From the NCBI GenBank assembly GCA_029953675.1, contig JAMWBK010000001.1, forward strand, positions 2,170,001 through 2,234,000: a stretch of DNA of 64,000 bases, in the 5' to 3' direction. This DNA is from Rhodosorus marinus CCMP1338. Its lineage: Eukaryota; Plantae; Rhodophyta. A program made the position numbers and the translations under genes. Each line of letters opens with the position of its first letter. Positions within the stretch are counted from its first letter, which is position 1. The notes beneath the pieces are model-generated. The model saw only the letters and a list, made by a program, of their open reading frames with translations, did no database searches and had not been told where the DNA came from. Positions 2,020 to 50,468 of this stretch are shown here, piece after piece.

Positions 2020-3996
2020 ATGTGCGAGGGTGAGAGCTTCGTAATGATGGGCGATCGATGGAGAATTGAGGGAGGATCAGAGCTTGTTTGGGATGTTGAG
2101 GTTGGCGAGGCTCATGAGGACCATATGGAGATGAGTGGTGAGCGCGTTTCCGCGATCGTTAGGTATGGAGTGTCTGAGGAAGGGGAGCTGAGTCTGTCTA
2201 GGCACGTTGTTTGGCCTTCGCTGAGGACGATCCCAAACGATACTCACGGAAGTCTCTCGTTCGTGTTCACTGGACCGGGTCCTGGCCTGGCTACAGGGGA
2301 GAAGGATGTGGTTCAGCAGTTTCGACTGCGTGGGATCATCTACGTAGAGTCGATCTGCGGGTCCCTCAAGACCTCACGATGGCTCTTTCCGTCCATCGAC
2401 AAGCCGATCTACTTCGAGCTGGCGATCATAGAGAACACAGGGAACGTATCTCTGCCGATCAAGACGCTCGTTCCTTCAGAAGGCACCGTCACACCCGCGC
2501 TGAAGGGCCTCGACGGTAGCTACGTCATTGATGCCTTGCCCATAGCCACGAACAAGGTCGATCTGCCTCCAGGCGATCATGCTCTCCACGCCATAGCCTA
2601 TAGAGCAAGGCGCAGCAATGAAATGGAGGAGTACTTAGATTCAGACGAACTCATGGCTGAGCTAGACCGAAGAAGGGCGCTTGTCAGCAACAGCCTGGAA
2701 GGTTCGATGCAGTTTGATTGCCCTGTGGATGACGTCCTGCCTGTACTGTTTAGGTTTTCACAGTTGAGGGCGACAGAGAGCGTGTTCAGGACCAGAAACG
2801 GACTGATGCACTCTCCCGGAGGTGGTGCTTACTACGCAGCTGTGTGGGCCAACGATCAGGCTGAGTACGCGGCCCCGATGTTTGCCCTTCTGGAGGGTTC
2901 CAATGCGTACGAAGCTACGGTGAACATGTTCAGAATGTACAAAAAGTTTATGAACAACACCGACCAACATCTGCCGTCTTCTATCATCGCGGAGGGCACC
3001 GACCACTTCAGCGCGAACGGGGACCGCGGGGATGGCTCGATGGTGGCCTACGCTCTTGGCCGGTTTCTGCTTCTCTCAGGCGATGAAAAGCTCGCGGAGG
3101 AGCTCCTCCCACTGCTAGAATGGTGTCTGGAGTTCTGCAATCGACACCTCAACCCTCAGGGCGTTGTGACATCGAACAGCGACGAGCTGGAAGGAAGATT
3201 TCCGACTGGGACTGCCAATCTCTACACGTCAGCGCTCACCTACGACGCCCTCGTCTCCGCAAAGATGCTATGCGATGAGCTGGGAAAGGCTTCCTCGTCA
3301 ATCTACCAGAAGAGGTCGGAGATTCTGAAGAAGAATATCGAATCCTACTTCGGCGCTCAGGTGGAAGGTTTCGATACCTATCGCTACTTTGATGGGTGCA
3401 CGGTACTGCGTTCCTGGATCTGTATACCTCTCACCATGGGAATCTTCGAGCGAGCCAGTGGCACCATCGACGCCCTGTTCTCCAAGCAGCTGTGGACAGC
3501 TGATGGACTGAGGACAACCTCCGGCAATCCGACGTTTTGGGACAGGGCAACGCTCAAGTGCCTGCGCGGTGTCTACGCTTCAGGCGAAGTAGAGAGAGCA
3601 CATAAGCATTTTCTGGCGTACTCACGGCGGAGACTGCTAGGAAATCACGTCCCGTACCCCGTTGAAGCCTACCCGGAGGGCAACGAGAGGCACCTGTCAG
3701 CGGAAAGCGCACTGTACTGCAGGGTTGTGATCGAGGGCTTATTCGGACTCCGTCCAACTGGATTCCGAAAGCTCACATGCACGCCTCGGCTTCCCCCCCA
3801 CTGGAACAGTATGTCTTTGCGAGGTCTACACGCGTGCGCGACGACTTTCGACTTGACAGTCAACCGAGACGAATCATCCAGGGAGGTTACCGTGCAAGTA
3901 ACTCAAAGAACTGGAGACAAGGACGACGAACCATTATCTACAAAAGTCTACAAACTCGAGCCCATGGAGGAGTCTTTCTCCATTACCTTAACTTAA
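2020..3996 (+). CDS. Intronless 658-aa putative six-hairpin (alpha/alpha)6 glycoside hydrolase of uncharacterised bacterial-type family
   Basis: Long clean ORF with motifs EMSG..VSAIVRYGV, VWPSLRTIPNDTH, YYAAVWANDQAEY, DRGD, SDELEGRF, WICIPL, TFWDR, HVPYPVEAYPEG, AESALYCR, and a C-terminal beta tail (PRLPPHWNSMSLRGLH). From memory it resembles Bacteroidetes six-hairpin glycosidases; not searched. Confidence 0.65.
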   Translation: MCEGESFVMMGDRWRIEGGSELVWDVEVGEAHEDHMEMSGERVSAIVRYGVSEEGELSLSRHVVWPSLRTIPNDTHGSLSFVFTGPGPGLATGEKDVVQQFRLRGIIYVESICGSLKTSRWLFPSIDKPIYFELAIIENTGNVSLPIKTLVPSEGTVTPALKGLDGSYVIDALPIATNKVDLPPGDHALHAIAYRARRSNEMEEYLDSDELMAELDRRRALVSNSLEGSMQFDCPVDDVLPVLFRFSQLRATESVFRTRNGLMHSPGGGAYYAAVWANDQAEYAAPMFALLEGSNAYEATVNMFRMYKKFMNNTDQHLPSSIIAEGTDHFSANGDRGDGSMVAYALGRFLLLSGDEKLAEELLPLLEWCLEFCNRHLNPQGVVTSNSDELEGRFPTGTANLYTSALTYDALVSAKMLCDELGKASSSIYQKRSEILKKNIESYFGAQVEGFDTYRYFDGCTVLRSWICIPLTMGIFERASGTIDALFSKQLWTADGLRTTSGNPTFWDRATLKCLRGVYASGEVERAHKHFLAYSRRRLLGNHVPYPVEAYPEGNERHLSAESALYCRVVIEGLFGLRPTGFRKLTCTPRLPPHWNSMSLRGLHACATTFDLTVNRDESSREVTVQVTQRTGDKDDEPLSTKVYKLEPMEESFSITLT

Positions 3997-13229: not shown

Positions 13230-15511
13230 TGTCACGTCCTGACAAGACAGATTGGTTCAGAAGCACAGCCTGAGGGCTAAAGTGGAGAACCGCGATGGGA
13301 ATTGTCACCCTATCCTTAGCCTATGAATACCGCAACTATGACATCTCTGTCGGGGTTAGCTCGAACGGAAGGACAAGGAAAAACCAGAGTTAGAAAAAAA
13401 AAAAAGTTAGATCGGAGACAAAGTAAAGAGAATGTTTTTACGAACAACTTGAATACCAGGACAAGCGTCATCTGAGGACGTTTCAGCTGGTCTCATCGCA
13501 TGCTTGCGATCGAGGGACGACGAACCTGAACCTGAATGAGCCTAAGAACCTGATAACCTAACCCTCATAACCAGAACCCGATAACCAGAACCTGCACACT
13601 ACGACCGTGGCCAGTCTACGTATGAAGCTCCAGGCACCCCAACCGAAAGCCCACGACGGGAGGCGTGACGACCTCGAAATCAATACATGGCTCAACAGCC
13701 TGAAGAATTTCTTCAAGTTGGCGGGCCTTGGCGAAGAAGCCGACAACAAAATTCTGTTAGCGGCAGGATACCTTACGGGCGACGCCTCGTACTGGTATTC
13801 CTTGCTGCCAGAGGATAAATGGACGTCCACATTCGACGAGTTTGAGACAGCGCTGCAACCCCAATTTTATCCTGCAGACGCGAAGATCCGGCTAAACAAC
13901 AGTTTGCGAGAGCGCAACGGCGCACATCGGTCGGGTGCTTACCCCGCATACTTCAACTTCTGAGAAATTGTTCGCTTCGTCGGTGGCCTAAAACCAGAGA
14001 TCCGGAAATACGTATACATCCAGGAGATCAAAGAATTTGAGGAAGCTCAAGCTTTGGCCTTGAAGATTGAAGGTGCCGAGATGGCGAGTGAATCTCTTAG
14101 ACGAGACGTCAAACCCGTGCGAGCATGGGGACACGCTCGGGTCTACCCTACCAGGCGGAACCCAGGTCTTGCAGAGGCGCAGCTACGCTAGCATCGTCTG
14201 CGACTTCTGTGGGAGACGCGGCCATACGAAACGGATATGTTGGGATAAGCCCGACAGGTACTCGACCGTTTCGACCTCGACCGGCCCTCTGGCGCAACGG
14301 TAAACGACTGGCAGCAGCCATTCCGTCCTAAGAGGGATTCCATACGCCATCCCGCTAATGCAACGAAGGGAGCTTGAACACAGCCTCACTAGGCACGTCC
14401 ATTGAAACCTTGGGCAAGGTGGATGTGAACCTGGAAGTAGGGAAGCGCCAACTCAATTGCCTGCAAAGATTGCCGGCAAAAAAAGCTTGGAGGACCCCAT
14501 CAGCGTCACTGTCTGGCTGTCTGACTTTACTCCGAGACCAACATCCCGGCGAAATGAGCCTCAACTGATGAAGGTCGTTCTTGGGGATTTGCGGGCTACG
14601 GAGTTATATTCCACGCATCAGCATCATTGCCGCACCTACGACAGCGTTGACGTTCCTGGGCATAACACAGGTTGGCCCGGGCTAGAGATCTGTTAATCTT
14701 GTTGGCGACATAGGAGCCCCATTGCAGGAAAAGGGGTCCGCCGTTTTGATGTAGTCCTGAAATACCAGGTCGTGCGGCAGTGACGGGTTGTGTCCGTAGA
14801 GCAATTCGAACGGCGACGAATTGGGCGCCAGAGCTTCCGATTGTCGAGCTCTCGCATAGCAGCCAAGTTACCGGGTAATACCTGCGTTCCTCCCGCTCAC
14901 GCAACCCCTCGAGGTTAAATCGGTATTGGGGCATCGGCTGAACGATGTGAATTTGAACGAAAACTTTGTCTATATGGAGCGTGAGACAACAGATGAGCTA
15001 CGATGGTTACCATATCATCAGTTGCCGCAGAATCGGAATACCAAGCAGCAGATCCCGTATTACACAAGCCTTCACAAGGCTGCTTCATCTTCAACCCGGA
15101 AGTCCTTTCCGTCGTTCGGAGATGTCACGTCCTGACAAGATAGGTTCAGAAGCGCAGCCAGAGGGCTAAGCCTAGCACGGCCAGCGTGCTAAACGCGCAG
15201 GTCGGTCCATGAGAAGTCTAGGCACCACCAGTAACGCGTCTGCGACTCAGAGTACTTCCAGAGCTAAACCTAGCACGGGCAGAGTGCTAAACCCCGCTCT
15301 GTCGGACGGGTAAGGTGGAGAATCGTGATGGGATTTGTCACCCCATCCTTAGCCCGTAAATACCGTAACTATGACATCGCTTTCGGGGCTAGCTCGAACG
15401 GAAGTACAAGAAAAAACCAGACAAAAGAAGTTAAATCCGAGACAAAGTACAAAGCTGCTCTTACGAAGCACTTGAATACCAGGACAAGCCAGCCAATAGA
15501 CGGACGTTCCA
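13230..15511 (+). mobile_element. Old, internally deleted and rearranged Ty3/Gypsy chromovirus (element 1)
   Basis: 5' LTR 13230-13485 and 3' LTR 15123-15511 (both TGTCACGTCCTGAC...CA, diverged). PBS 13488-13499, gag remnant 13607-13963, CCHC knuckle CDFCGRRGHTKRIC near 14195-14240, an apparently inverted internal segment at about 14600-14930, and a chromodomain remnant at 14926-15110. No TSD found. Confidence 0.88.
13607..13963 (+). pseudogene. Ty3/Gypsy gag fragment
   Basis: PKAHDGRRDD..INTWL..L..FF...KILLAAGYLTGDASYWY...FDEFETALQPQF matches the retrotransposon gag pattern; truncated. Confidence 0.85.
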
Positions 15512-15915
15512 ATGGAGGTTTTCTTAGGGACAATCTGTCCCATTTTCATTGACAGTCTGTCTTCAAAAATGCTAAACAGCCTGTCCTTTATGTTTTTCGG
15601 GTGTGACGTCTCCACCTTCCAGCAATGTCCGGCTATGCAAAATTATGCTCGGGCTGTGCCAAAATCTCTGGAGGTGCAACACCCTTTTGAGCTTAATCGT
15701 TATTGGCACATCCCGATGGAGCAAGAGTATAAGTACGATGGGCAAACTCGATATTTCCCAGGTTAGCTGGAGAGAAGGGAGACAAGATAGAGAAGAACAA
15801 GATAGAATTGGGATATATTGCCTAATTTGGGAGTAATTAGGGGGAAATAAAACTCGAAATATGGAATAATTTGAGTAATACCCAGCTGGCAGTTTGAGAC
15901 GTAAAATCTGGTCTC

Positions 15916-16806
15916 ATCGCGCCTCGACTGAGAGGGTCTGCGATATTTTCTGCTCCTCTCTTGTATTCGATATCAAAGGTAAACGGCAATAAGCGATTTA
16001 CATATCTCGCCTGTCTTTTGGTTAGCTCCTTTTGCGAGTGTAGAAAACGCAAAGGGTTATGGTCGGTGCGAAGCACGAAGAGCACTTCGAAGAGCACGAA
16101 GCACGAAGAGCACTTCGAAGAGCACGAAGCACGAAGAGCACTTCGAAGAGCACGAAGCATGAAGAGCACTTCGAAGAGCACGAAGCACGAAGAGCACTTC
16201 GAAGAGCACGAAGCATGAAGAGCACTTCGAAGAGCACGAAGCACGAAGAGCACGAAGCACGAAGAGCACGAAGCATGAAGAGCACTTCGAAGAGCACGAA
16301 GCATGAAGAGCACGAAGCACGAAGAGCACGAAGCACGAAGAGCACGAAGCACGAAGAGCACGAAGCACGAAGAGCACGAAGCACGAAGAGCACGAAGCAC
16401 GAAGAGCACGAAGCACGAAGAGCACGAAGCATGAAGAGCACGAAGCACGAAGAGCACGAAGCACGAAGAGCACGAAGCACGAAGAGCACGAAGCACGAAG
16501 AGCACGAAGCACGAAGAGCACGAAGCACGAAGAGCACGAAGCACGAAGAGCACGAAGCACGAAGAGCACGAAGCACGAAGAGCACGAAGCACGAAGAGCA
16601 CGAAGCACGAAGAGCACGAAGCACGAAGAGCACTTCGTGCTCTTCGTGCTTCGCACCGACCATAACCCTTTGCGTTTTCTACACTCGCAAAAGGAGCTAA
16701 CCAAAAGACAGGCGAGATATGTAAATCGCTTATTGCCGTTTACCTTTGATATCGAATACAAGAGAGGAGCAGAAAATATCGCAGACCCTCTCAGTCGAGG
16801 CGCGAT
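15916..16806. repeat. 170-bp inverted repeat (15916-16085 / 16637-16806) enclosing the tandem array
   Basis: The left arm is the reverse complement of the RNase H tail with no mismatch by eye. The ORF track shows mirrored peptides RTDHNPLRFLHSQKELTKRQ on both strands. Confidence 0.95.
16070..16633. repeat. 564-bp tandem array of GAAGCAC / GAAGAGCAC / TTC modules (dominant 16-bp period; 28-bp higher-order unit in the left part)
   Basis: Directly visible; the only recurring variant is GAAGCAT. Confidence 0.98.
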
Positions 16807-17330
16807 CAACCAGATGGCGGTTTCCGGTATACTACCCCAAGAAGATTGGACCGGAGCATATCTACAAGATCCTGATTTCGCAGCAGTCTACCCAGAAGCA
16901 GTGAAGTACGAGGAGCAGGGATTTCGTAGAAAGCGGGACATCTTGTACAAACATCATCGCGTTTGTGTGCCGCGAAAATTCGTACCGGACTTGCTGCGGA
17001 AACACCACGAAGAGCCAACGGGGGGACATTTTGGCCTTCATAAAACGGTGAACCTGTTAAAGAGGCGTTATTACTGGCTGACCTTAAGAGACGATGTTCA
17101 GTCCCCGATCCGAACCTGTGAAATCTGCCAACGGCAAAAACCACTGAGAGCTTCTCAGGGATTTCTACAACCACTTCCTGTACCTGAGTCAAAGTTGGAG
17201 GACATCACCATGGATTTCATTGTTAGTCTTCCCATGACTAAGTCCGGAGCTGACGCAATTCTAGTGATTGTTGACCGTTTCTCAAAATACGCGAAATATA
17301 TCGCTACAAGGACGGATGCAGACGCTCGTA

Positions 17331-17899
17331 TGACGGCAGAGCTGTTTTTCGAACACTGGGTGCGTTTTGCAGGCTTACCGCGGACGATAGTCTCCGATCG
17401 AGATTCCAAGTTTACCGGGCTCTTTTGGCAGCAACTAATGAGGATGCTTAAGGTCAAGACTCACCTAAGTACGGCCTATCACCCGCAGACGGACGGACAA
17501 ACAGAGCGGGTCAACCAAACCTTGGAGACTTACCTCCGGTGTAACAGTAGCCAACTCCGCCATGGGAAGATCAGAGTCCCATGACGCTTGGCTACTGTTA
17601 CACCGGAGGTAAGTCTCCAAGGTTTGGTTGACCCGCTCTGTTTGTCCGTCCGTCTGCGGGTGATAGGCCGTACTTAGGTGAGTCTTGACCTTAAGCATCC
17701 TCATTAGTTGCTGCCAAAAGAGCCCGGTAAACTTGGAATCTCGATCGGAGACTATCGTCCGCGGTAAGCCTGCAAAACGCACCCAGTGTTCGAAAAACAG
17801 CTCTGCCGTCAGAGCGGGTCAACCAAACCTTGGAGACTTACCTCCGGTGTAACAGTAGCCAAGCGTCATGGGACTCTGATCTTCCCATGGCGGAGTTGG
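17331..17899. repeat. Duplication-inversion inside the integrase core (inverted segment 17551-17811)
   Basis: 17551-17811 is the reverse complement of 17331-17554 plus 17863-17899, and 17502-17554 is repeated directly at 17810-17862. Confidence 0.92.
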
Positions 17900-20123
17900 T
17901 CTACAACACGCAGATTTCGGAGTCTACTAAGTATTCGCCCTTCGAACTTCTATACGGACGAAACCCTGAGCTACCGGGATCCTTAATAGTACCACGTGCA
18001 GAAGAAGCTACCCCTACGCCTTTACCTGATGCAGCGGAAGTTCTTCTACAACATCAACACGACCAATACCTGGAGGCGCGGAACAACATGCTTTACGCTA
18101 AGCAAATCCAGAAGATGCGGATGATGCGAGGCGGCGAAACCCTGACTTTACCCCCGACGAGCTGGTATTATTATCGACCAGAAACCTGCCGTTGCAAGAC
18201 TCTAAACCGTTTCGACCGCGGTACATCGGCCCTTTTCGCATCAAACGGAAGATAAATGATGCCGCCTATACGTTAACGTTGCCAGCAGGGATGAAGATAC
18301 ATCCAACGTTCCACGTTTCCCTGCTGAAGAAATTTAGGGGAAACCCCAACAACGTTCAACTCAACATACCCGATTTTGCAGCTGAAGTAGCGGGAGGCGA
18401 AATCAAATCCGTACTTGGTCATCAGATGAAACCAGAGGGAACCAGCGAATATATGGTATATTTCGAGGGGGAAACAGTAGCTGATGCTCGATGGATTGCA
18501 GCTCACCAGTTGCCACAAACCTCTGCTACAAAAAGGCAAATTCGCTACTACATGAACTTTCATCGTGCTGCTGAATCTGCCCGACCCCGCGCTTCTTCTT
18601 CGGTGGGAGGGATGTGACGTCTCCACCTTCCAGCAATGTCCGGCTATGCAAAATTATGCTCGGGCTGTGCCAAAATCTCTGGAGGTGCAACACCCTTTTG
18701 AGCTTAATCGTTATTGCCCATCCCGATGGAGCAAGAGTATAAGTACGATGGGCAAACTCGATATTTCCCAGTTTAGCTGGAGAGAAGGGAGACAAGATAG
18801 ATAAGAACAAGATAGAATTGGGATATATTACCTAGTTTGGGAGTAATTAGGGGGAAATAAAACTCGAAATATGGAATAATTTGAGTAATACCCAGCTGGC
18901 AGTTTGAGACGTAAAATCGGGGCACAGGTCGAACGGTTGTCACGTTTCGTCCGATCAAAAGATTAGTACAGAAATTTGTACGATCAATATGTAATAAACG
19001 AAAAAACAACATGTATTCGCCGAACAGCTTTAAAAAATCTGTCCGATAAACAATTCAGAATCAGACAGTTATTTTCAAATATTTTCGTCCAATTTTCCGC
19101 CTCATATTTGTTTATTATATATTATTCGTAACCCGATACTTTATCCGACGTTTTCTGACACCCCTAGCTGGTCGGCATAAGATCATGCCTTCAATGCCAC
19201 TATTATATCGTTATTCTTCATAAGAGCGGGCTGCCTTTCTCCCAGTTTTTTATCCGAGAATACTACATATTGAGCTCCTTGACCGTATCTGTTTCCAGTA
19301 AACAAATTTTTAGTACAGTATACTTGACCTCCCCGCCCTCCCACCCTTCGCTATTAATTTCCTCGCGTTCAAGTGAAGGCCCTCTGTTTGCGGAGGGTCA
19401 GCTGTCAACACGTGGAAATGCTATTTGAGATACCAATCTGGAGTCCAGGGATTGATTGATATAAAAGTTTCCGGAGATTTTCTATATATTTGGGGGACAA
19501 CCGCTTTCAAGGCACAGGAGAGCAGCCTAAATAGAATCCATGTGGAAGGGGTGGGGGAAAAGTGAAGGAGCTAGCCCATGTATTGAGAAATCTCATGCGG
19601 ATTAATATACACCAAAGGATATTTTGGGGTTGCGGGAAGTGATTATTTTGGAAGATGGAAGGGGGGATAGTAGCTGCAGATTCTTGTAAGAGTGAAGTAA
19701 GACGCCGAGACGAATGTAAGAACACGCGAGGGGTCGGAGAAGCCGTTATTTTTCTCTAAAGATAATTGGTTAATGATCAATGAAATTATCCAATAGAGAA
19801 CGAATAGATTTTTCTTTTCAAGTAATTAACCAATCATATTCTACATACACGATTTGAGAAATATTGATTGGAAAGCTATCGGTAGAATCGAAACGAAGAA
19901 AAGAAGAACATTTGACGAACAAAGATTCGATTTTTTAATTAAAAACTATCCACGAGGCCAAGCCTTGGGGCTTTTGGTGGCGAATGATACCTTCGTTTCG
20001 AAGATTCGAGTAGAAAATTATTGGATTTCAATTATCGAAAAGCGAAGGGTTTTGGGGTTTTCGTGTCCTTTAAAGACTACTTGACTCGTTTCAACGTTGT
20101 TGGGTCTGAAAGTGGGTGGAGAG

Positions 20124-26830: not shown

Positions 26831-27496
26831 CTATACATGGCACGGAGTTTTCGAGTAGTGGGCTCCTCCGCATTTCGAGCACCGTACGGTGCGTGGCTTT
26901 CTGTACGGTTCAAAGTCTTCAACTTGCTCGACACGTTCTTTCCGTTTTTTACGGATGTTTTTACTAGGAAATTCGTGCTGTTGAACCTGAGCGGTTTGTG
27001 AGCTGCACGTCCGACTGTTATGTCCATGTTCATGACACCGCGAGCACGTTACGCGCCTACTGGAGTTCGGCTTGGCCGCTATTTGCCTCTCCTTCCTCAG
27101 CTTTGTAAGAATATGCCAAGCAGTTCTGTACGGAACAGTCATCCCATGACTGTACCTAATAGAGCTGATAACATCATTAGGCGTCGCATCTTCGACATTT
27201 TCAAGAACGTAAATTGCCTCCTGCACCAGCCCCTCATGCCCGACCTTCGCCTTGGCAGAGCAGAACGGGTGATGCGGTTTGTACTTGATCAATCGAGCCC
27301 CACCACCATACATCGAAGTTAAATTCATATGAAATTGACACCTCCCATCCTTATCCTCTTTCCTCGAAGGACACTGAATCGCAAACCTTTTCTTATCGCT
27401 CGAGACAACGTAGTAGGCCACTTCGTACTCAAAGCAGTATCGCTTAATGGCCTTTTTGCCTTCACCTACGTCCTTAAACGTCTCTCCAATTCTCAT
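26831..27496 (-). mobile_element. MuDR/Mutator transposase-derived ORF (221 aa): N-terminal MuDR domain plus two zinc knuckles, no DDE core
   Basis: IGETFKDVGEGKKAIKRY...SDKKRF.IQC...CQFH...KYKPHHPFC (MuDR DNA-binding domain pattern); VTCSRCHEHGHNSRTC and VRCSKCGGAHYSKTPC. Confidence 0.7.
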
Positions 27497-40500: not shown

Positions 40501-40783
40501 GTAATATCCGTAAATTTTAATGGGCAGCTGCCTACTGCGGCGCATCACTATTTCTACTACGATCTAGGGAACATTTACGGGAACCCCGCTACCGGGGTCT
40601 CATGCTACGTTCTAAAGAAAAAGCAGGGACCGCAGGACTTCTTGCGGGACAGCTGCAAGCACTTACTACACAAGAGCGCGGAGCTGAGCGACGTACGGGC
40701 TCAGATGAACCGGAAACTATGGCAAGGTAACGCGGAGATTGCGATACTCTCAGAGCGCCTACTCTCTAGATTGCGATACTCAC

Positions 40784-41422
40784 CTACATGATGTTTTTCA
40801 TGTCTCGCTATTACGGAAGTTCAATGGACCGGAACCTGAAGGCTCGCTTGTAGTTCCTGCAATGCAACCAGACATACCACAGCGCTAGTTGAAGTCAGTT
40901 TTGGGACATCGTCGAGATGAAAAGAACCTGAATGAATACTTCGTTTACTTTGAAGGCGAGACAACGGACGATTTGAGATGGTTACCCCACCATCAACTAC
41001 CGCAGAACCAGAATACCAAGAAACAAATTCGGTATTATACATATCTCCACAAGGCAGCGTCTTCTTCCACGGGATAGTTCTTTCTTTCAGTGGGGAGGAG
41101 TTGTTACGTCCTGACCGAACAAGTCCTGACCGAACAAGTCAGGACGTAACAACTCCTCCCCACTGAAAGAAAGAATACCGAATTTGTTTCTTGGTATTCT
41201 GGTTCTGCGGTAGTTGATGGTGGGGTAACCATCTCAAATCCTCCGTTGTCTCGCCTTCAGACTAAACGAAGTATTCATTCAGGTTCTTTTCATCTCGACG
41301 ATATCCCAAAACTGACTTCAACGCTGTGGTATGTCTGGTTGTAATGCAGGAACTACATGTGAGCCTTCAGGTTCCGGTCCATTGAACTTCCGTAATAGCG
41401 AGACAAGAAAAACATCATGTAG
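40784..41422. repeat. Diverged palindrome of chromodomain + PPT + LTR start (arms 40784-41115 / 41138-41422)
   Basis: The centre reads GTGGGGAGGAGT-TGTTACGTCCTGAC...GTCAGGACGTAACA-ACTCCTCCCCAC. The arms are similar but carry substitutions and indels. Confidence 0.92.
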
Positions 41423-44100
41423 TTGAGAATCTCCCGGGAGCTCCAGCGTATATGCTAGATTACCAATTTTTTCGTAGAATTTTAAACGGTCCGACATATC
41501 TGGGCCGAAAAACTTTTGAATCTGGGAGTTGAAGAGTCCGTGTTGACAAGAGCACATATTCGCCTGGTTCAAAGTGGAGGTCTCTTTGTTGACAAGAGCA
41601 CATATTCGCCTGGTTCAAAGTGGAGGTCTCTTTTGCCTCGATCATAGTAGAAGCGTTGGCGTTCTTGGTTGGCGCGGGCTAGGTCTCGTTGGTCCTTTTG
41701 GGGTTGTAGCAGGACCGTGGCGGCTTCAGGTATTGGTAGTGAACGGTCTCGGTCATCTGGGACTTTAAGGTCGGGAGGTATTGTCGGGTTCTTTCCATAA
41801 GTCAACTCGAAAGGGGAAAACTGCGTCGCTTCCGAGATCTGACGATTGCACACCAGCTCTGCAATCGGTAGGTCTTCTGCCCAATTCGTTGCAGACGAAT
41901 TACACCTCAGGGACGTCTCCAGCGTCTGATTGATTCGCTCTGTCTGTCCGTCTGTCTGTGGATGATATGCTGTACTCAGGTTTTGCCTTACTTGCAGCAT
42001 CTTCAACAATTCCCTCCAGAAAAATCCCGTAAATTTTATGTCTCGGTCAGAAATGATGTCTCTAGGTATACCAGCGAACCTAACCCAATACCCAATGACG
42101 TAAGAACAGCTTCGCGGTTTGTTGCGCCGTCGCCGTTGTCGTTGTCGGTAGGAAACGGGCATAACTTTGTGAACCGATCGACGATCACGAAGATCGCGTC
42201 GAACCCGTCCTCGGTTAGAGGTAGGCTGACAATGAAATCCATCGATGCGGATTGAAATCTCCCGTCTGGAACAGGCAGTGGGTTCAACTTTTCCGCTGAG
42301 TGTCGGAGTGGTTTTTGCCTCTGGCAAACTTCGCAAGTTCTTAAGACTTTCTCTATATCCTGCTTCAGGGTTGACCAATAGTATTTCCTCTTAATCAGGT
42401 TCCGGGTTTTCGTTACGCCAGGGTGTCCTCCGGTTGGCTCTTCATGATAGCTTCGTAGGAGAGCGGGTCCGAGACGTTCCGAACCCAAATCCTGTTATGC
42501 AAGAACAGGGTATCGTTCCTTCGAGTGAACCCTTGGGCAGCATACTTCTGGTCTTCCCGGTACACCTCACTGAATTCTGGGTCCTGAAGGTAAGCCTGCT
42601 GCCAGTTGATGTCGTTGTTGATCGACGAGGTTGCCAAGTGTTGGATGGCATGCCGACTTAACGCATCGGCGATATCCTCCTTGACGTTTAGTAAGCTCCT
42701 TCTGCGAGTGCAGGAATCTCAAAGGGTTGTGATCTGTACGAACCGCAAACTCGACCCCCTCCAGATATGTACGCCAGTGTAGGGCTGCAGCGGCTAACGC
42801 GAACAACTCTTGTTCATAGGTTGAGTAGTTTTCCTCTGCTTCGGTAAACCTTTTCGAGTAGTACGCGATCGGGTGTTCACCGTCGTCAAAGGTCTGAAGA
42901 AGTACAGCTCCTACGCCCTTGTTGCTGGCGTCCGTACACACAATGAACCCTTTTCCGAAGTCAGGGTTGTGCAAAACTGGTTCGTTTGATAGTCAAACTA
43001 TAGAAAGCTTTTTGCTGCTGTGCTCCCCACTGAAACTTAACTCCCTTTTTCGTCAACTCTGTCAACGGTGCCGCAATTAGGCTGAATCGCGATACGTAAT
43101 TTCGTAGGTAGCCCGTAAAACCCAGAAAGGATCTGACGTCTTGAACATTCTTCGGGGTTCGCCAGTTTTTGAGAGCAGCTACTTTGCCGGGGTCCGGTCG
43201 CCGTTTCCCGCTTCCAACTAGGTGACCCAAATACTTCGTCTCGGGAACTCCAAAAGTACACTTTGATAGCTTGGCAAACAATTTATGTTTGCGTAGTTTG
43301 TTGAACACTATACCCAGGTGCCTTCGGTGTGTCTCCAGGTTCGGCGAATAAATGACGATGTCGTCGAAGAAAATCATGACAAAGTCATTAAGCTCGTTGA
43401 AAAAGATGTGGTTCAAAAGTCTGGTGAACACTGCCGGTGCATTTGTCAGACCGAATGGCATGACAAGCCATTCGTATAGTCCGAATGGTGTTGTGAATGC
43501 CGTCTTCTGGATATCCTCCTCTATCACTCTTAGTTGCCAGTATCCACTCCGTAGATCGACCACACTGAGGTAAGATGCGGTGCCCAACGCATCGAGGCAA
43601 TCATCAATCCGTGGCGGATTCGTTTGATTCGCAATTGTCTGCCGGTTCAATCTCCTGTAATCAATACACAGCCGCTTACCGCCATCCTTTTTGTCAACAA
43701 AAAGGCAGGGAGACGCGAAAGGAGATGAACTCGGCCGAATCAGCTTTCTCAGTAACAAGTTCTGTAGCTGTTCCTTTAGTTCGCGTTGGTCTGGGAGATT
43801 CATCCGGTATGGTCGTTGAGCCACTGTTTCTGCTCCCGGTCGTAGCTCGATTTCAAAGTTAACCTCGCGCCATGGAGGTAGCTCATGAACTTCGTCGGCG
43901 AATACCGTTTCGTATGTTGAGGTGATCCAAGCTTCCAACTCCATAGCTTCTTTCTTTCGTGTTGCTTCTTGGGTTTTCACACCCGGTTTTTCTTGTTCAA
44001 TTGTTTCTGGTGTAACTTGTTCTGGTTCATTTTCTGGTTTCTTTCCGGGTTGTATTATGGTTTCAGGTATCATTCCGCCTGAGTTCAACTTCCTCCGAAA
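41138..44100 (-). mobile_element. Degenerate Ty3/Gypsy chromovirus pol (RT, RNase H, integrase, chromodomain), frameshifted
   Basis: [88 protein letters not shown] 46-bp tandem duplication lies at 41541-41632. Confidence 0.95.
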
Positions 44101-45026: not shown

Positions 45027-47240
45027 ACGGCGCAAAAGCCATTAGTGTCCAACAGAAGAGAAGGCGCAGTTAACTAGAAATTCTTCGAGTAAATCCGACT
45101 CGTTCGGGGATGGTGGTGGTTCTTCGCGTAAATCGGACGTCTTCAGGCAAGAGTTAGAGGCGATTTGTACTCCTCATTCTATTTTGCCCCCCTTTTGCCT
45201 GACCTTCGGCAAGCCTGGGACTCGACGAGTACGTATCTCCTCACGCCCCAGCTGGAAATCTTGAACAGCCTGTCCACTTCGAGAGGTGCGCCTTTTTGCT
45301 TTCCTTCTAGTCTGCTTGGCTTTCTCACTGGCCCGGCAGTTTGGGGCAAGTCTGTCTGGTACAGGTCTCAAGGACGCTCTGCTGATCTTCAACGGGGTGG
45401 AGCTGTCCCCATTGTATCGTTCAGTTGATTGGCCTTTCCTTTGCTGCTCTACACCTCTCTATACAATGTTTCGCTTTGTACGCTCTTGGTTGCTGCAGTC
45501 CCAGCGCGATGATGTACATAAAAAGGTTACGAATGCCTCCGGACCAGGAGCCAGACCGTCACAAAGTACTACGGGATTTTCACGCCTGCTCAGGATATTA
45601 CTTCGTTGTCCTCCTGAACAAGATCCTCCCTTCCTCCCTGCTTCCAATGAACCCCCGGCAGCTTTTGATTCCAAAAAGATTTAACTTCACAACAACACGA
45701 AAGCGGAAGCGTCAATGGGTCGACATAGGACAGCTCAGGACAGCTTCAGGACATTCAGATCCCCAAATCACTCTTCCCCCCTTGAAAAATTTCTCTTGTC
45801 AAAGGCCAAGACATGAAAATAAAAATATTTTTGGTTTATCAAACCCATTTTCCATCGTAGTCAACACCCCACATATACTGCCAGGCCATTGACTTCCACA
45901 ATACAAATTCTACAAATCCAGACCAAAATATGTGGTCCCACCCGTCCGCTACAAAGATCCTCCTGACCATTATCGTCAGTAATACTCATAATTTAATTAT
46001 AAAATCTATAAATAGAATTAAAGGCATATGACGGAAGGGGGGGGGAAGAAGTATGCTCTGTCCCGTGTAACCCATCCAAAAGAGGGACGGGGCAGGGGGG
46101 GTTGAAAAGCAAAAGAATGAAACAAAAAATATCTGCAAATGGTACTCCTGAGCCTCCGCGAACCCTGGCCCCGAAAACCCAATCCTCAAAACCATGAAAT
46201 TCTATTGTTTGTTTGAGGAAGAGGAGGAGCGTGGTCTGTTGCAACCGCGCAGACCCCCCCTCCCCGGGGGGGGGGCTGGAGATGTAAATCGGTCGACGAC
46301 TTCCAGGAATCTTACAATTTTATTCTATTTCAAAGGGGAAAAAAAGATGCAGGAAAACCTACGCACCACCAGTAAAGAACCCTGAAAATCGCGTGAGAAA
46401 GCAGACACCGCCGGGGAGGGGTTAGGAAAAAATAGGCCCATGTAATATTGGAAGAAGCAACTTGGCCCATAAAATGGACCCAACTGGACAGCTTTCTAGA
46501 AGGCCCAAATCATGATTCCGAAAAAAGGCAAAAAAAGGGAATCATGGCTTTTTCTAGGGCCACGGAATGGCCGGAATGGCGTAAAAAGCTGGATTTCATT
46601 TTTCGCTTTGTTTTGGGAATGGGTCCTCGTACATAAACAATTCCATTTTTGGTGGTAAAATAGGGGGGTATTTTGGCTGCGGCGGTGAGGAGAGAAGAGG
46701 GGGTGTTGAGTTTCGGGGGTCAGGGAGGGGGGGGGGTTCTGGTTGGGGAGTTCTTGACTGGGTTGGAAGAGCGGGGTTTCCGGGGGGAAGGTCTGTATGT
46801 TTGTCTTGGGAAGTGGGAGAGACGGGACAGAGAGACACTCGCGGAGGGGAGAAGGCTTGAGGTTGCTTAATAGTGTGCCAAGGAGGAAGGAGGATTCGTT
46901 GGGCTTTCTTGGAGGGTTTGGGGGTGGGTGGGGGGGAGGGAGGTGGAGTTGGGAGGGGGTGGGAAGGGTTCTAGGAGGGGAGCGTTTAAGGCTCGAGTAC
47001 GTTTTCTCTTATTTAGTTTGGTGGTTTGGTTGTTGAGAGAAGGTTGTCGGTGGGAGGGAGGCTCTTTCGCGTGGCTTTTCGTTGGTTTGTGACTTGTTTG
47101 ACGCATGAGGGGTTCAGGATAGCGGTTTATCTGTTGGTGTTGGTGCCTACATGTGCGAGTTGGGGCGGGGCTTGTTTGAAGCGTCCGGTCTTGTTTGTTT
47201 TATACTTCAGTTGGTTTATTAGGATATTGACTTGAACAGC

Positions 47241-49049
47241 ATGGGATCTGTCGAGGATGGTACCGCAGATTTCGCGCCAGCGTTGGGTGGATCGAGGTCG
47301 GATCTGGGAGTAGGAGAACAGGATGTAGATGCGGCAGTGGTTCGCCAGGTGGAGTTTTACTTAAGTTGGAGAAATTTGCAAACGGACTACTATTTGAAAG
47401 ATAGAATGACGACGGACCATTGGGTTCAGCTTCAACTTATTGTCGACTTCCCGAAAATGCAGGCGTTTCGAATATCCAGCGTTGAAAATCTTGCACGAAT
47501 TCTACAAGAAAAGTCAGCGAAATTGGAGGTTAACCTTAGCACACTCCAGGTCCGGCCGATATTTCTGGTGCAGGATACAAAACGAAGCGTGTTGATTCTG
47601 CGAGATATAGAGAGCGGAACTTCTGAGCAGGAAATTCGCGACTTGTTCGACGGCGTCGAGAACTGCCCGCCAATATACTCCATAAAGCCGGAAGTCGCGA
47701 ATACTTGGTTCGTAACTTTTGATACAGAGGAAGGGGCGGTCCTGGCTTTTGAACTTACGAAGAAGTTGCACTTCAAGGATCAGCCTGTGAAGGCACGTGT
47801 TAAGAACACTTCGCGCGTCAACCCAAGGGCGGGCGCGAGCTATGTGGAGCCTGTTGCGTTGCCGGTTGGTGAGCTACCTCAGCCCGCAACCCCTACATAC
47901 TATGCTCCTCCTTATTATCAGAGAGGTGGGTTTTCAGGGCCTCTACCCCAGGATCCAGTGAGCGCACCAGCCGTGACCGGTGCAATCCCCATGGTTCAAC
48001 ACCAGAGAAGACCATCCCGTGGTGGACTTAGTCCACAGCCGAACCACAGGAGCTCACCTAGTTCGCAGACCCGAGGTCAAGGCCCTGCTGGTGGAGTCCC
48101 TGGGACAGTGGGCGGAGCGGAGAGGGGCACTTCAAGCCACAACATGAGGCAGAATCAGCGTTTGAGCAGACAAGCAAACGCATCGAAGGGAGGGCGCCCA
48201 AAAGGAAAAAGGAATCGCTTCCCTGATGGCGGAGAGAACAAGGGTTCCGATTCAGCAGCCGAGAAGCCGAAGCAGGACGTGAGCTTTACACCGATTAACT
48301 TTCCACCTCTCGGAAAAGAGGATACACCGCAGAACGAAGAGAAAGAGCCAACTGAGGCCAAGGATACCACGGAGGTTAAGGATACCACGAAGGTTAAGGA
48401 TACCACGGAGGTTAAGGATACCAGGGAGGTCAAGGAAGTCAAGGAAGTCAAGGAAGTCAAGGAGGTCAAGGATGTCAAGGATGTCAAAGAGGTCAAGGAG
48501 GTCAAGGAGGTCAAGGAGCCTGTGGTGAACGTCGTAAAGGAATCAGTAGATAAGTCTAGCACGTCTTCGGTGGATAAGGTTGCCAACGATGTCCCGGGAG
48601 CTGGGTCTGACGATGACAAAAGAGCAAGCAGGAGTAGTTCGGAATCGGGGGCGAATGGCAGTGCGAAGACCTATGCATCTATCCTCCTCGCTGCAAAAGC
48701 AGCGAAGCAACAAGTACCAGTGCAAGATAACCCATCAGGGACGCAAGCTCATGCGAGATCAAATGATGTGGCTAGTGCACAGAAAGAGAAAGAGAGTGTA
48801 ACCCCTACCCGAGATGCTCCTGATCCAATCAAGGAAAAGGAGGAACAGAAGCGCGAGACAGGCGGAACTAATAATCTTAATACTAATCGAGGCGTGCCCT
48901 CTGCAGGGGCATCTGGTGACTCTCCAGACGAGCATGGGGTTGCGGACGTGAAACTCGAGGTGACCGAAGAGGCCCGCCCTGTATCTGTTTGGAGCAACCT
49001 GCCCAGATCTGTACTTGAAGCCCCTTCATCCCAGGCGCAGACGCAGTAA
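47241..49049 (+). CDS. LARP4: La-related RNA-binding protein, LARP4-like (La motif + RRM, long disordered tail)
   Basis: RQVEFYLS..NLQTDYYL..M....V.L.LIVDFPKM (La motif); RSVLILRDI..GTSEQEIRDLF...NTWFVTFDTEEGA (LARP4-type RRM); NFPPL and TYASIL motifs. Confidence 0.85.
   Translation: MGSVEDGTADFAPALGGSRSDLGVGEQDVDAAVVRQVEFYLSWRNLQTDYYLKDRMTTDHWVQLQLIVDFPKMQAFRISSVENLARILQEKSAKLEVNLSTLQVRPIFLVQDTKRSVLILRDIESGTSEQEIRDLFDGVENCPPIYSIKPEVANTWFVTFDTEEGAVLAFELTKKLHFKDQPVKARVKNTSRVNPRAGASYVEPVALPVGELPQPATPTYYAPPYYQRGGFSGPLPQDPVSAPAVTGAIPMVQHQRRPSRGGLSPQPNHRSSPSSQTRGQGPAGGVPGTVGGAERGTSSHNMRQNQRLSRQANASKGGRPKGKRNRFPDGGENKGSDSAAEKPKQDVSFTPINFPPLGKEDTPQNEEKEPTEAKDTTEVKDTTKVKDTTEVKDTREVKEVKEVKEVKEVKDVKDVKEVKEVKEVKEPVVNVVKESVDKSSTSSVDKVANDVPGAGSDDDKRASRSSSESGANGSAKTYASILLAAKAAKQQVPVQDNPSGTQAHARSNDVASAQKEKESVTPTRDAPDPIKEKEEQKRETGGTNNLNTNRGVPSAGASGDSPDEHGVADVKLEVTEEARPVSVWSNLPRSVLEAPSSQAQTQ
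48354..48518 (+). repeat. Coding minisatellite: 18-bp (EVKDTT) units grading into 9-bp (EVK/DVK) units
   Basis: Directly visible within the LARP ORF. Confidence 0.95.
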
Positions 49050-50468
49050 CGCCGAAGCTACGATGACTTCCTGGCCGCAATCAAACTTGGAGTGGGTTGC
49101 TAATTGTTTCCTGCGCCGAGTGCACTCCTGTTGTATCAGCTGGCGAGCGAACTGTTCCCGTAGCTCCGTGTTTTCCTGGAAGCGAGCATTAAGGCTAAGC
49201 ACGAATTGTGTCATGGGTTTTGGGAAGGGGGGGAGGTGGTGTGGGGGGAGGGGGAGGGGGATGGGGTGGGGTGGGGTGGGGGGAAGGGGAGTTACCTATA
49301 GCCGACCTCGTTCAATTGAGCACTTTCGTATATATAGAGCAGTTTTGGTTTGTAATTTTTTGGTTGGCTGCGTTACCACGGTACGTGTGCTTTTTGAGAG
49401 CTTGCCGTGTGGAAAGGTCTACCGTAGAGCTGAATCGAGTGTAGTGACGTGAAATGCAGGCAGCCGTTCTGCGAACGGGACCGGAACGGTTGATCACTGC
49501 TGCTGTCTTGTGGATGAAAATCGGTTGGCGAAGCGATCTTGAGGTTCGCACGTGGATAACCGAGCAAGGAAGCATGAATTATGTGTCTTTAACAGTGACA
49601 ATGATTTGCTGTGGGTAGCATCTCTCGCAGGGTGGATAGATAAGCGAAAAAGCAAGGCTGAGAGGGGTGCAAACGAGAGGAGAAATGAAACATTTAGAGT
49701 GAGCCGCAAAACGGAAGGCCCCTGCCGCCGGGACAAGGTTAGCAGACAACTGTGCGGCTGGTGATGAAAAACCATTGGGGAGAACTGGAAATATTGTCAT
49801 GAGGTCTGAATCAATACCTCATATGGTTTTTGGGAACAGACAAGAGCACGTGTATAGAAGCCTGAGTGATGTGCTATCAACTAGCAGCGATGAACTTGAG
49901 GCTGGAGCACTTGTACAATGGGATGCGAGAATGGGTGGTTGTCGATTTGGTTGTCTTACATGGATATCAATGTTTTGTGTAGCTAGTTATCCTGTCTTTG
50001 GTCTTGATTTTTGAGCCTTGATTTTACAACCTACTTCACATGTCGCAGACCGGGTCGGAGAATCTAACTACCAGGAAAACAACAAGAATAAGATGATTGT
50101 TTTGAAAAGGTCAATTTAGCCAAGTCTACCAAGCTTGCCAAGCAAAATGTTAGGAGAACAGCACACAGGTCTGGACTTTTAAGAAACCAAGATATAGACA
50201 GTCCAGTACTTATCCAGAGAGATACAAACCCAAGTACAGAAGTTAGAACCTTAAGAGTTCCTTGTGACCAAACTGACCAGAACTTCCGTCACGAAAAACC
50301 CCCAAAACGAGCACTCCAGGATGTGGACACCGTCGGCGCCATAAAACCCTTTCCCGCACAGAACGCTGTGGAGAGTATTGGTGCAACGTTAAGGGGTTGT
50401 TGTCGTTCTTAAGCCTGTGCTTTTTCGGCTCGTTAGGAGCGGAAGAGATTGAAAGTATGGAATCCAAA

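Follow-up and report, generated by a model that had tools for sequence, protein, structure and literature searches.

How does a tandem array come to lie inside a retrotransposon when its units are inverted copies of 16 nt of the element's own coding sequence? This question is raised by a locus in the red alga Rhodosorus marinus CCMP1338 (NCBI GCA_029953675.1, contig JAMWBK010000001.1, 3.8 Mb), of which we analyzed one stretch of 64 kb, called the window below; all positions refer to it. The array occupies 551 nt (16086–16636, + strand) within a dead, internally deleted copy of a Ty3/gypsy-type long terminal repeat (LTR) retrotransposon, and it forms the true spacer between the two arms of a perfect inverted repeat (15916–16085 / 16637–16806, 170 of 170 positions complementary). 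Rather than being inserted into a continuous gene, the array sits at the turn where the gene doubles back. As its origin we favor one snap-back template switch by the element's own reverse transcriptase (RT), followed by ordinary tandem-repeat growth, and we put the probability of this reading at roughly 0.5. All searches were made with pieces as encoded in the window or with a partial query covering the RNase H tail and integrase.

A greedy parse resolved 16070–16652, that is, the array together with the tips of both arms, without residue into three modules: A = GAAGAGCAC (9 nt), B = GAAGCAC (7 nt) and L = TTC. At its right end the array reads A-TTC-a-b, where a is GTGCTCTTC and b is GTGCTTC, and continues into CGC ACC GAC CAT (junction 16625–16652). 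This composition and this junction had been described in an original prediction made from the sequence, and both were confirmed. The 30 units led by B comprise 23 of the form B-A (16 nt) and seven of the form B-A-L-A (28 nt); the latter are units 1–6 and 9, at the left end of the array. Five B units (4, 6, 9, 10 and 18) carry GAAGCAT instead of GAAGCAC, which turns CACG into CATG. Tandem Repeats Finder (TRF) reported a period of 16 with 35.6 copies and a score of 805. When at most one mismatch is allowed, the + strand holds 30 copies of the 16-mer and the − strand one, every one of them at this locus, while shuffled sequences are expected to contain none. Because the array is stop-free in all six frames, it gives rise to four spurious open reading frames (ORFs) of 213–254 aa (within 15837–16809), which gene callers could take for repeat proteins.

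The original prediction had called the array a satellite, which overstates what is a single-locus minisatellite: satellite DNA forms arrays of kilobases to megabases at several loci and in high copy number, and here there is one array of 551–583 nt. Its exact copy number and minor variants are uncertain because the genome was assembled by NextDenovo 2.5.0 using Nanopore GridION data, with three rounds of Pilon polishing based on 100-bp Illumina reads (PMC10250338). The large-scale structure of the assembly is probably trustworthy. The same contig encodes a host ORF (2020–3996) that clusters with a Rhodosorus protein.

Beyond the composition of the array, its two flanks identify its source. BLAST extended the inverted repeat to 180 nt at 98.9% identity (15906–16085 / 16815–16637). 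The right arm is the native gene: it encodes VLFVLRTDHNPLRFLHSQKELTKRQARY... from 16637 onward and leads into the H2C2 zinc finger and core of the integrase. This native pol remnant (16637–17554, + strand) comprises the last third of RNase H, the H2C2 finger and most of the integrase core, and was matched by the Pfam profiles PF17917 (RT_RNaseH, positions 73–103 of 105), PF17921 and PF00665. In the left arm (15916–16085) the native RNase H C-terminus and integrase linker recur as their reverse complement; the − strand of this arm encodes VLFVLRTDHNPLRFLHSQKELTKRQARY...SRGA and likewise matches RT_RNaseH positions 73–103. The 16-mer is present in both arms, whose tips are B-A (16070–16085) and a-b (16637–16652). 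The array unit is thus the reverse complement of 16 native nucleotides, in agreement with the predicted derivation from adjacent RNase H coding sequence.

The arms meet at the fold point GAAGAGCAC-TTC-GTGCTCTTC (16625–16645), where the − strand presents a GAA loop closed by a C:G pair. Two inverted arms are thus joined by a short loop, and one of them runs on into native sequence, which supports the origin by strand switching that had been predicted. The 45-nt core around the fold gave −27.9 kcal/mol (z = −11.4). ViennaRNA DNA parameters do not capture the special stability of the C-GAA-G closure; the GAA-triloop part of the mechanism described below rests on the literature, in which mini-hairpins of the GCGAAGC type are extraordinarily stable (PMC13037366). 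The array has the orientation of the inverted arm and lies on one side of the fold only. Its 551 nt contain nothing but the 16-nt tip of the inverted arm (GAAGCAC GAAGAGCAC), the 9-nt part of that tip and the 3-nt loop. Beyond the arm tip B-A, array units start with A and end in TTC (12 nt) or GAAGCAC (16 nt), and both the left and the right end of the array read B-A-TTC. The junctions unique to this locus are LTR/arm, A-TTC-a, A-TTC-A and GAAGCATGAAGAG.

That the array does not interrupt a continuous gene follows from what lies upstream, where the + strand supplies no RNase H positions 1–72, RT, protease or gag; a profile search found no gag, protease, RT or N-terminal part of RNase H between the 5′ LTR and the array. 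We also considered two element copies inserted head to head and rejected this arrangement, as no more than 180 nt are inverted and the LTR that they adjoin is in direct orientation. At that far end, the LTR/arm junction reads ATCTGGT-CTC (15906–15915, + strand), and only TC-TGGTCTC is left between the 5′ LTR and the inverted arm. This is the expected position of the primer-binding site (PBS), a TC spacer followed by TGG. The ATCTGGT at this position is the reverse complement of 16809–16815, which provides a microhomology at the distal junction. Over the slightly longer interval 16807–16815 the native reverse complement is ATCTGGT-TG, so that CTC replaces TG at the LTR junction. No tRNA gene from which to infer the PBS was found in the 64-kb window.

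The element that contains these structures is a 3.3-kb remnant. It is bounded by the target-site duplication TCGGG (15597–15601, with the identical 5-mer at 18917–18921) and by direct LTRs of 305 nt (15602–15906, + strand) and 304 nt (18613–18916, + strand), which differ by five substitutions and one indel. The LTR termini, TGTGACGTCTC...GAGACGTAAAA, form an in-register terminal inverted repeat. Downstream of the rearranged integrase region considered below, pol resumes at 17810–18617 (+ strand) with the end of the integrase core and a Tf2-1-type SH3 domain, and stops just inside the 3′ LTR. A frameshift lies near 18.14–18.15 kb, where the ORFs 17830–18255 and 18192–18617 overlap in different frames, the SH3 domain being carried by the second. 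A polypurine tract (PPT), GGTGGGAGGGA, was read from the sequence at 18602–18612 (+ strand) and is homologous to the junction AGTGGGGAGGAG+TGTTAC in a related element of the window. The direct LTRs and the short duplication on both sides are those of a Ty3/gypsy element; the full order gag-protease-RT-RNase H-integrase is not present, and the copy is a defective derivative. Since the inverted structure is internal to an LTR element with direct terminal repeats and has its array on one side of the fold, it is not a foldback transposon of the FB type, whose ends are long inverted repeats that both consist of tandem sub-repeats. Rfam identified no family in 13.0–19.5 kb, and the locus has no evident function.

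Just upstream, 13249–15489 holds an older, internally deleted retroelement relic, whose LTR-like repeats (13249–13466 / 15138–15489) are about 81% identical, and which retains an ORF with a CCHC zinc knuckle (14067–14303) together with small RT, integrase and pol C-terminal fragments. The relic and the array-bearing element together form a transposon nest. Comparison of the relic with the second, related element at the DNA level gave no information on LTRs or PBS.

What did the native sequence at the fold look like? The original prediction proposed the parent GAA GAG CAC TTC GTG CTT CGC (EEHFVLR), an imperfect stem-loop whose arms and loop supplied the three modules. Both 170-nt arms, however, hold GTGCTCTTC+GTGCTTC or its complement. 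As a-b or B-A thus sits in both arms, the most parsimonious parent would be GTG CTC TTC GTG CTT CGC ACC GAC CAT (VLFVLR-TDH), of which the array unit is the reverse complement. The A-TTC to the left of a-b, which had been taken as the cause of the fold, then reads as its product, and GAAGAGCAC is not supported as native coding sequence. The native sequence contains an imperfect 9+7 direct repeat, GTGCT(CT)TC / GTGCTTC, and its real small hairpin is not the proposed EEHFVLR stem-loop but GTGC-TTC-GCAC. On the minus strand this hairpin reads GTGC-GAA-GCAC, which includes GCGAAGC, and the native minus strand contains GTGCGAAGCAC.

Related proteins were compared at the same site. The three closest relatives read YLEG-VEF-AVRTDH, YLEG-VKF-TVRTDH and YLEG-AFF-SVRTDH; in full, the related element on the − strand of the window reads YLEGVEFAVRTDHNPLRFLHSQKELTKRQ, P0138 (JGI contig L002) reads YLEGVKFTVRTDH with the codons GGA GTG AAG TTT ACT GTA AGG ACT GAT CAT, and P0139 reads YLEGAFFSVRTDH. 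A set of 171 relatives shows the pattern W-R-x-Y-L-x-G-x-x-F-x-[VIL]-x-T-D-H. If A-L (GAA GAG CAC TTC) were native in the register of a-b, E, E and F would replace the conserved Y, L and G of these 171 relatives. The closest relatives have V, not E, at position −6 and G, not E, at −7. At position −5 of the wider family H is common (28 of 171) and L is rare, which lends no support to the parent preferred here. Protein conservation at −5 and −6 is indecisive, and the decisive argument is the DNA symmetry, with the closest relatives in addition.

Two further relatives, P0012 and P0121, are marine transcripts from MMETSP, which shows that related RNase H-integrase sequences are expressed. Relative to 42672–42965 of the window, they carry a deletion or divergent sequence that ends exactly before VRTDH, near the site homologous to the fold point of the array element.

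On these grounds, the reading that we favor can be laid out in steps. The minus-sense strand, synthesized leftwards, would reach the native direct repeat GTGCT(CT)TC/GTGCTTC and end in ...GAAGCAC GAAGAGCAC; a backward slip by one GTGCT sub-repeat would add GAAG; and the 3′ end ...CAC-GAA-G would snap back as a GAA triloop closed by C:G. Copying of its own strand over about 180 nt would then yield GTGCTCTTC GTGCTTC GCACC..., the inverted arm, reproducing the turn A-(GAA/TTC)-a-b-arm. The new 3′ end ...ACCAGAT could pair with ATCTGGT at the LTR-end/PBS position, and the element would be finished without leader, gag, protease, RT and the first two thirds of RNase H. With RT as the polymerase, this would amount to hairpin self-priming of the first-strand cDNA followed by a surrogate second strand transfer. 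Such self-priming of second-strand synthesis from a 3′ hairpin of first-strand cDNA is a known property of RT (PMC2095812), and for Ty3/gypsy elements it has been proposed that tandem repeats originate when strand transfer goes wrong inside virus-like particles (PMC7004042).

The primary product would have been arm-B-A-TTC-a-b-arm, since both ends of the array read B-A-TTC, and further units would have been added on the inverted-arm side, later growth being mainly slippage or unequal exchange of 16-, 28- and 56-nt blocks. For this growth the variants are informative. Units 3–4 (BALA, B*ALA, where B* contains GAAGCAT) recur as units 5–6, and all five C>T variants fall at the CpG of the B-to-A junction, with none at the equivalent CpG of the A-to-B junction. 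Because variant blocks recur as blocks and the five changes share one CpG position, the pattern points to block duplication, by slippage or unequal exchange, of units that already bore the variants; alternatively, the C>T pattern may reflect context-specific base-calling error. The dozens of rounds of template switching on one hairpin that had been envisaged earlier are not needed, and are disfavored by the recurrent blocks and the one-sided CpG changes. Taken as a whole, the earlier interpretation is supported for the modules, the RNase H origin, the strand switch and the absence of the 16-mer from the other sequences searched, and is not supported for the EEHFVLR parent and the dozens of rounds; it did not include the GAAGCAT variants, the 170-nt arms, the lack of RNase H upstream, the LTR remnant or a second inverted duplication.

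Two other inverted duplications were detected in the window. The first lies in the integrase region of the same element (17331–17899), which runs forward to 17554, inverted through 17555–17811 (− strand) and forward again from 17810, so that an inverted copy of integrase codons ~232–318 stands between two forward copies. The copies are 100% identical, with perfect arms of 224 nt and 90 nt, and the junctions show the microhomologies CCAA (17551–17554) and CA (17810–17811). A simple snap-back in cis, whichever way it ran, cannot give this geometry; the complementary strand must have served as template.

The second occurs in the related gypsy-like element on the − strand, which has a fold-back of its own. 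Its outer arms (40775–41036 / 41174–41431) are 94–97% identical and its inner arms (41078–41115 / 41138–41175) are a perfect 38 nt, the arms being separated by a 41-nt indel (41037–41077). At the center, the 15-mer GTCCTGACCGAACAA occurs twice and equals GTCCTGAC-CGAACAA, that is, inverted tip plus loop. The resulting architecture (native arm, loop, inverted tip plus loop twice, inverted arm) is a miniature of the array locus, and between the fold and the PPT/U3 border, which has its homologue in the first element, there are 14 nt, the fold being on the far side of the border. Near the integrase of this second element there is also a 46-nt tandem duplication (41527–41618; TRF 41541–41633, two copies, 100%).

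Which polymerase made the fold-back? The RT of the element is slightly more likely than host replication or repair. At its start the native arm corresponds to RT_RNaseH position 73 of 105, with no RT or RNase H N-terminus upstream, and nothing remains of the segment between the PBS and the fold, which is what a minus strand that stopped short of passing the fold would leave. The distal junction, an LTR end followed by TC-TGG with the 7-nt ATCTGGT, is at the position that the RT model requires; we estimate that a random genomic deletion would end at the PBS position with a chance of roughly 10 nt in ~3.5 kb. The related element has a fold-back of the same design, its fold lying close to the PPT/U3 border, another landmark of reverse transcription. 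Moreover, all three inverted duplications found by BLAST in the window fall in gypsy-like elements.

Several observations weigh against the involvement of RT, or leave it incomplete. The arms show no difference in 431 independent nucleotides, whereas the LTR pair shows six in 305, a contrast with P ~2e-4 if everything arose in one reverse-transcription event and without gene conversion. Gene conversion is not dependable in this genome because the arms of the second element have diverged to 94–97%. The forward-inverted-forward arrangement in the integrase needs a template in trans, which could be a second cDNA or RNA fragment inside the particle. The RT model does not account for the 3-nt patch at the LTR junction, where CTC replaces TG. 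To form the 28-nt unit (A-TTC-A), one or more additional switches would be required, and no simple single-step derivation could be given. Finally, protein and metagenome-contig searches found no intact copy of the same family: the best match of a 315-aa ORF in a word-indexed protein search was P0012, at 62% identity, an exhaustive comparison with 1.84 billion representatives yielded nothing closer than P0012, a search with the junction-spanning left-arm ORF returned zero matches, exact look-up of ten ORFs of the window found none in the collection, and a pattern search of metagenome contigs for related loci gave 77 matches, none of which was confirmed. Speculatively, a particle containing two slightly different genomes could reconcile the arm identity and the integrase geometry with RT.

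DNA synthesis by the host after integration is the foremost alternative, which we regard as possible but less likely. A break or stalled fork in a once-complete element would have been resolved by snap-back synthesis-dependent microhomology-mediated end joining (SD-MMEJ) or by replicative template switching of the fork stalling and template switching or microhomology-mediated break-induced replication type (FoSTeS/MMBIR), deleting ~3–4 kb and leaving an inverted templated insertion, with the array arising from repeated dissociation and re-priming and from later slippage. The identity of the arms, set against a difference of ~2% between the LTRs, would make the rearrangements younger than the insertion. 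In SD-MMEJ, hairpin-forming repeats prime synthesis and the nascent end anneals across the break, and the junction microhomologies of 2, 4 and 7 nt fit this snap-back model (PMC5728401; PMC2943611). The integrase arrangement is a classic signature of template switching during replication (PMC5453318), for which a fork provides the complementary-strand template. Host synthesis must, however, treat as two coincidences that the left breakpoint is at the LTR/PBS boundary and that the fold of the other element is at the PPT/U3 border. It also does not by itself account for all three events being in retroelements, although selection against scars in genes could give the same picture, and templated insertions from end joining are usually tens of nucleotides long, not 180 nt plus a 551-nt array.

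A stronger form of the RT reading, in which the fold-back and much of the array arose in a single episode of reverse transcription, is unlikely. The cDNA 3′ end CTTC would repeatedly re-pair with GAAG beside the 16-nt tip and recopy the tip each time. If this were true, it would add a telomerase-like reiterative mode to the RT of LTR retrotransposons; hairpin cDNAs would be recurrent and integrable in this alga, given two loci within 64 kb at landmarks of reverse transcription; and an LTR-driven transcript would fold into perfect 170-bp and 224-bp hairpins that could silence the family in the manner of Mu killer.

We consider it improbable that the fold-back, or at least the array length, the TTC units and the GAAGCAT variants, are artefacts of assembly or base calling. 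C>T calls in CpG context and periodic repeats are typical problem cases for Nanopore sequencing, and the locus has no independent contig or ORF in the collections searched. The assembly itself is of the Nanopore and Pilon type (PMC10250338), and 100-bp reads cannot resolve a 551-nt array of 16-mers. Yet the locus lies within a 3.8-Mb contig with unique flanks, and single chimeric reads are outvoted by a consensus assembler. Small forward-inverted-forward structures with junction microhomology are unlike whole-read fold-back chimeras, and the second fold-back nearby has arms that have diverged to 94–97% and so is not artefactual.

The complete model of the original prediction, a native hairpin GAAGAGCAC-TTC-GTGCTTC (EEHFVLR) on which dozens of reiterative template switches built the array, is likewise improbable. 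It yields exactly the modules A, B and L, it agrees with H at −5 in 28 of 171 members of the wider family, and a 3′ CTTC that re-paired with GAAG might, in principle, allow these 16 nt to be copied again. It disregards the 170-nt arms, though, and makes GTGCTCTTC at 16637 an ad hoc insertion that was then copied to the far arm. The residues of the closest relatives at −6 and −7 disagree with it, the proposed parent is predicted to fold weakly (−4.5 kcal/mol, z = −2.3) and without using the stem that had been suggested, and the shared variants argue for block duplication over a fixed template. Insertion of an independent genomic or telomeric satellite, which had been named as a possible refutation of the original prediction, is very unlikely, as no evidence for it was found, the unit exactly matches the reverse complement of the 16 coding nucleotides next to it and runs without a break into the inverted arm, the remainder of the 64-kb window lacks the 16-mer, and the 32-mer was not found in JGI metagenome contigs or GTDB genome contigs, a weak test in that neither collection holds the rest of the alga genome.

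Elsewhere in the window we noted an ORF (26831–27496, − strand) with the DNA-binding domain of a MuDR-family transposase (PF03108, E = 8e-7), which is a DNA-transposon remnant or a domesticated gene. A 605-aa ORF (47232–49049) contains an in-frame coding repeat of 9/18/36 nt (48354–48518, KEVKDT-like), and a G-rich repeat of 23/35 nt lies just downstream of it (49222–49291).

The locus falls into known categories, namely tandem repeats of retrotransposons, fold-back template switching and instability at palindrome centers. Tandem sub-repeats of Ty3/gypsy elements (Macas et al. 2009; Vondrak et al. 2020, PMC7004042) are likewise short arrays within an element, have a proposed origin in abnormal strand transfer and are potential precursors of longer arrays. 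Those sub-repeats lie in the 3′ untranslated region, occur in many copies and extend to long arrays at multiple loci, whereas the present array has its origin in RNase H coding sequence, stands at the center of an inverted duplication and is known from a single locus of 551 nt. Hairpin self-priming by RT (PMC2095812) resembles the proposed event in that a minus-sense 3′ end folds back and is extended on itself into a sense/antisense fold-back; there the product is an artefact of in vitro reactions and libraries, and here the product of a putative RT reaction would have been completed with LTRs and integrated.

Among repair processes, SD-MMEJ of the polymerase-theta type (Yu and McVey 2010, PMC2943611; Khodaverdian et al. 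2017, PMC5728401) shares hairpin priming in cis, annealing by microhomology and an outcome of deletion with inverted templated insertion, but it typically inserts a few to tens of nucleotides, compared with 180 nt plus an array and a far junction at the LTR/PBS boundary. Four-point template switching (Löytynoja and Goldman 2017, PMC5453318) shares the switch to the complementary strand and back, the inverted copies and the microhomology; the integrase event fits this model exactly, while the events described usually span <100 nt and carry no tandem array. The parallel with telomerase and DRT2 that had been drawn as an analogy holds for the outcome, many short head-to-tail units, and not for the machinery: neither a template RNA nor a specialized RT is evident here, and the variants point to ordinary array dynamics. 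Mu killer (PMC3440606) is comparable in that part of a transposon gene is duplicated in inverted orientation behind a terminal repeat with a promoter; the present locus would give a hairpin RNA if it were transcribed.

New are the combination of these features, the base-for-base coding origin and the recurrence at two landmarks of reverse transcription within 64 kb. At present the finding concerns one decayed element copy, in which every base of the repeat unit can be traced to its source: an imperfect 9+7 repeat, 16 nt long and part of the RNase H coding sequence, was inverted at a GAA triloop and amplified. The two loci, one at the PBS position and one at the PPT/U3 border, suggest that reverse transcription fails in a reproducible way, with fold-back cDNAs integrated as the outcome. 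If this proved true genome-wide, it would provide a concrete mechanism by which retrotransposons seed minisatellites and hairpin-RNA loci.

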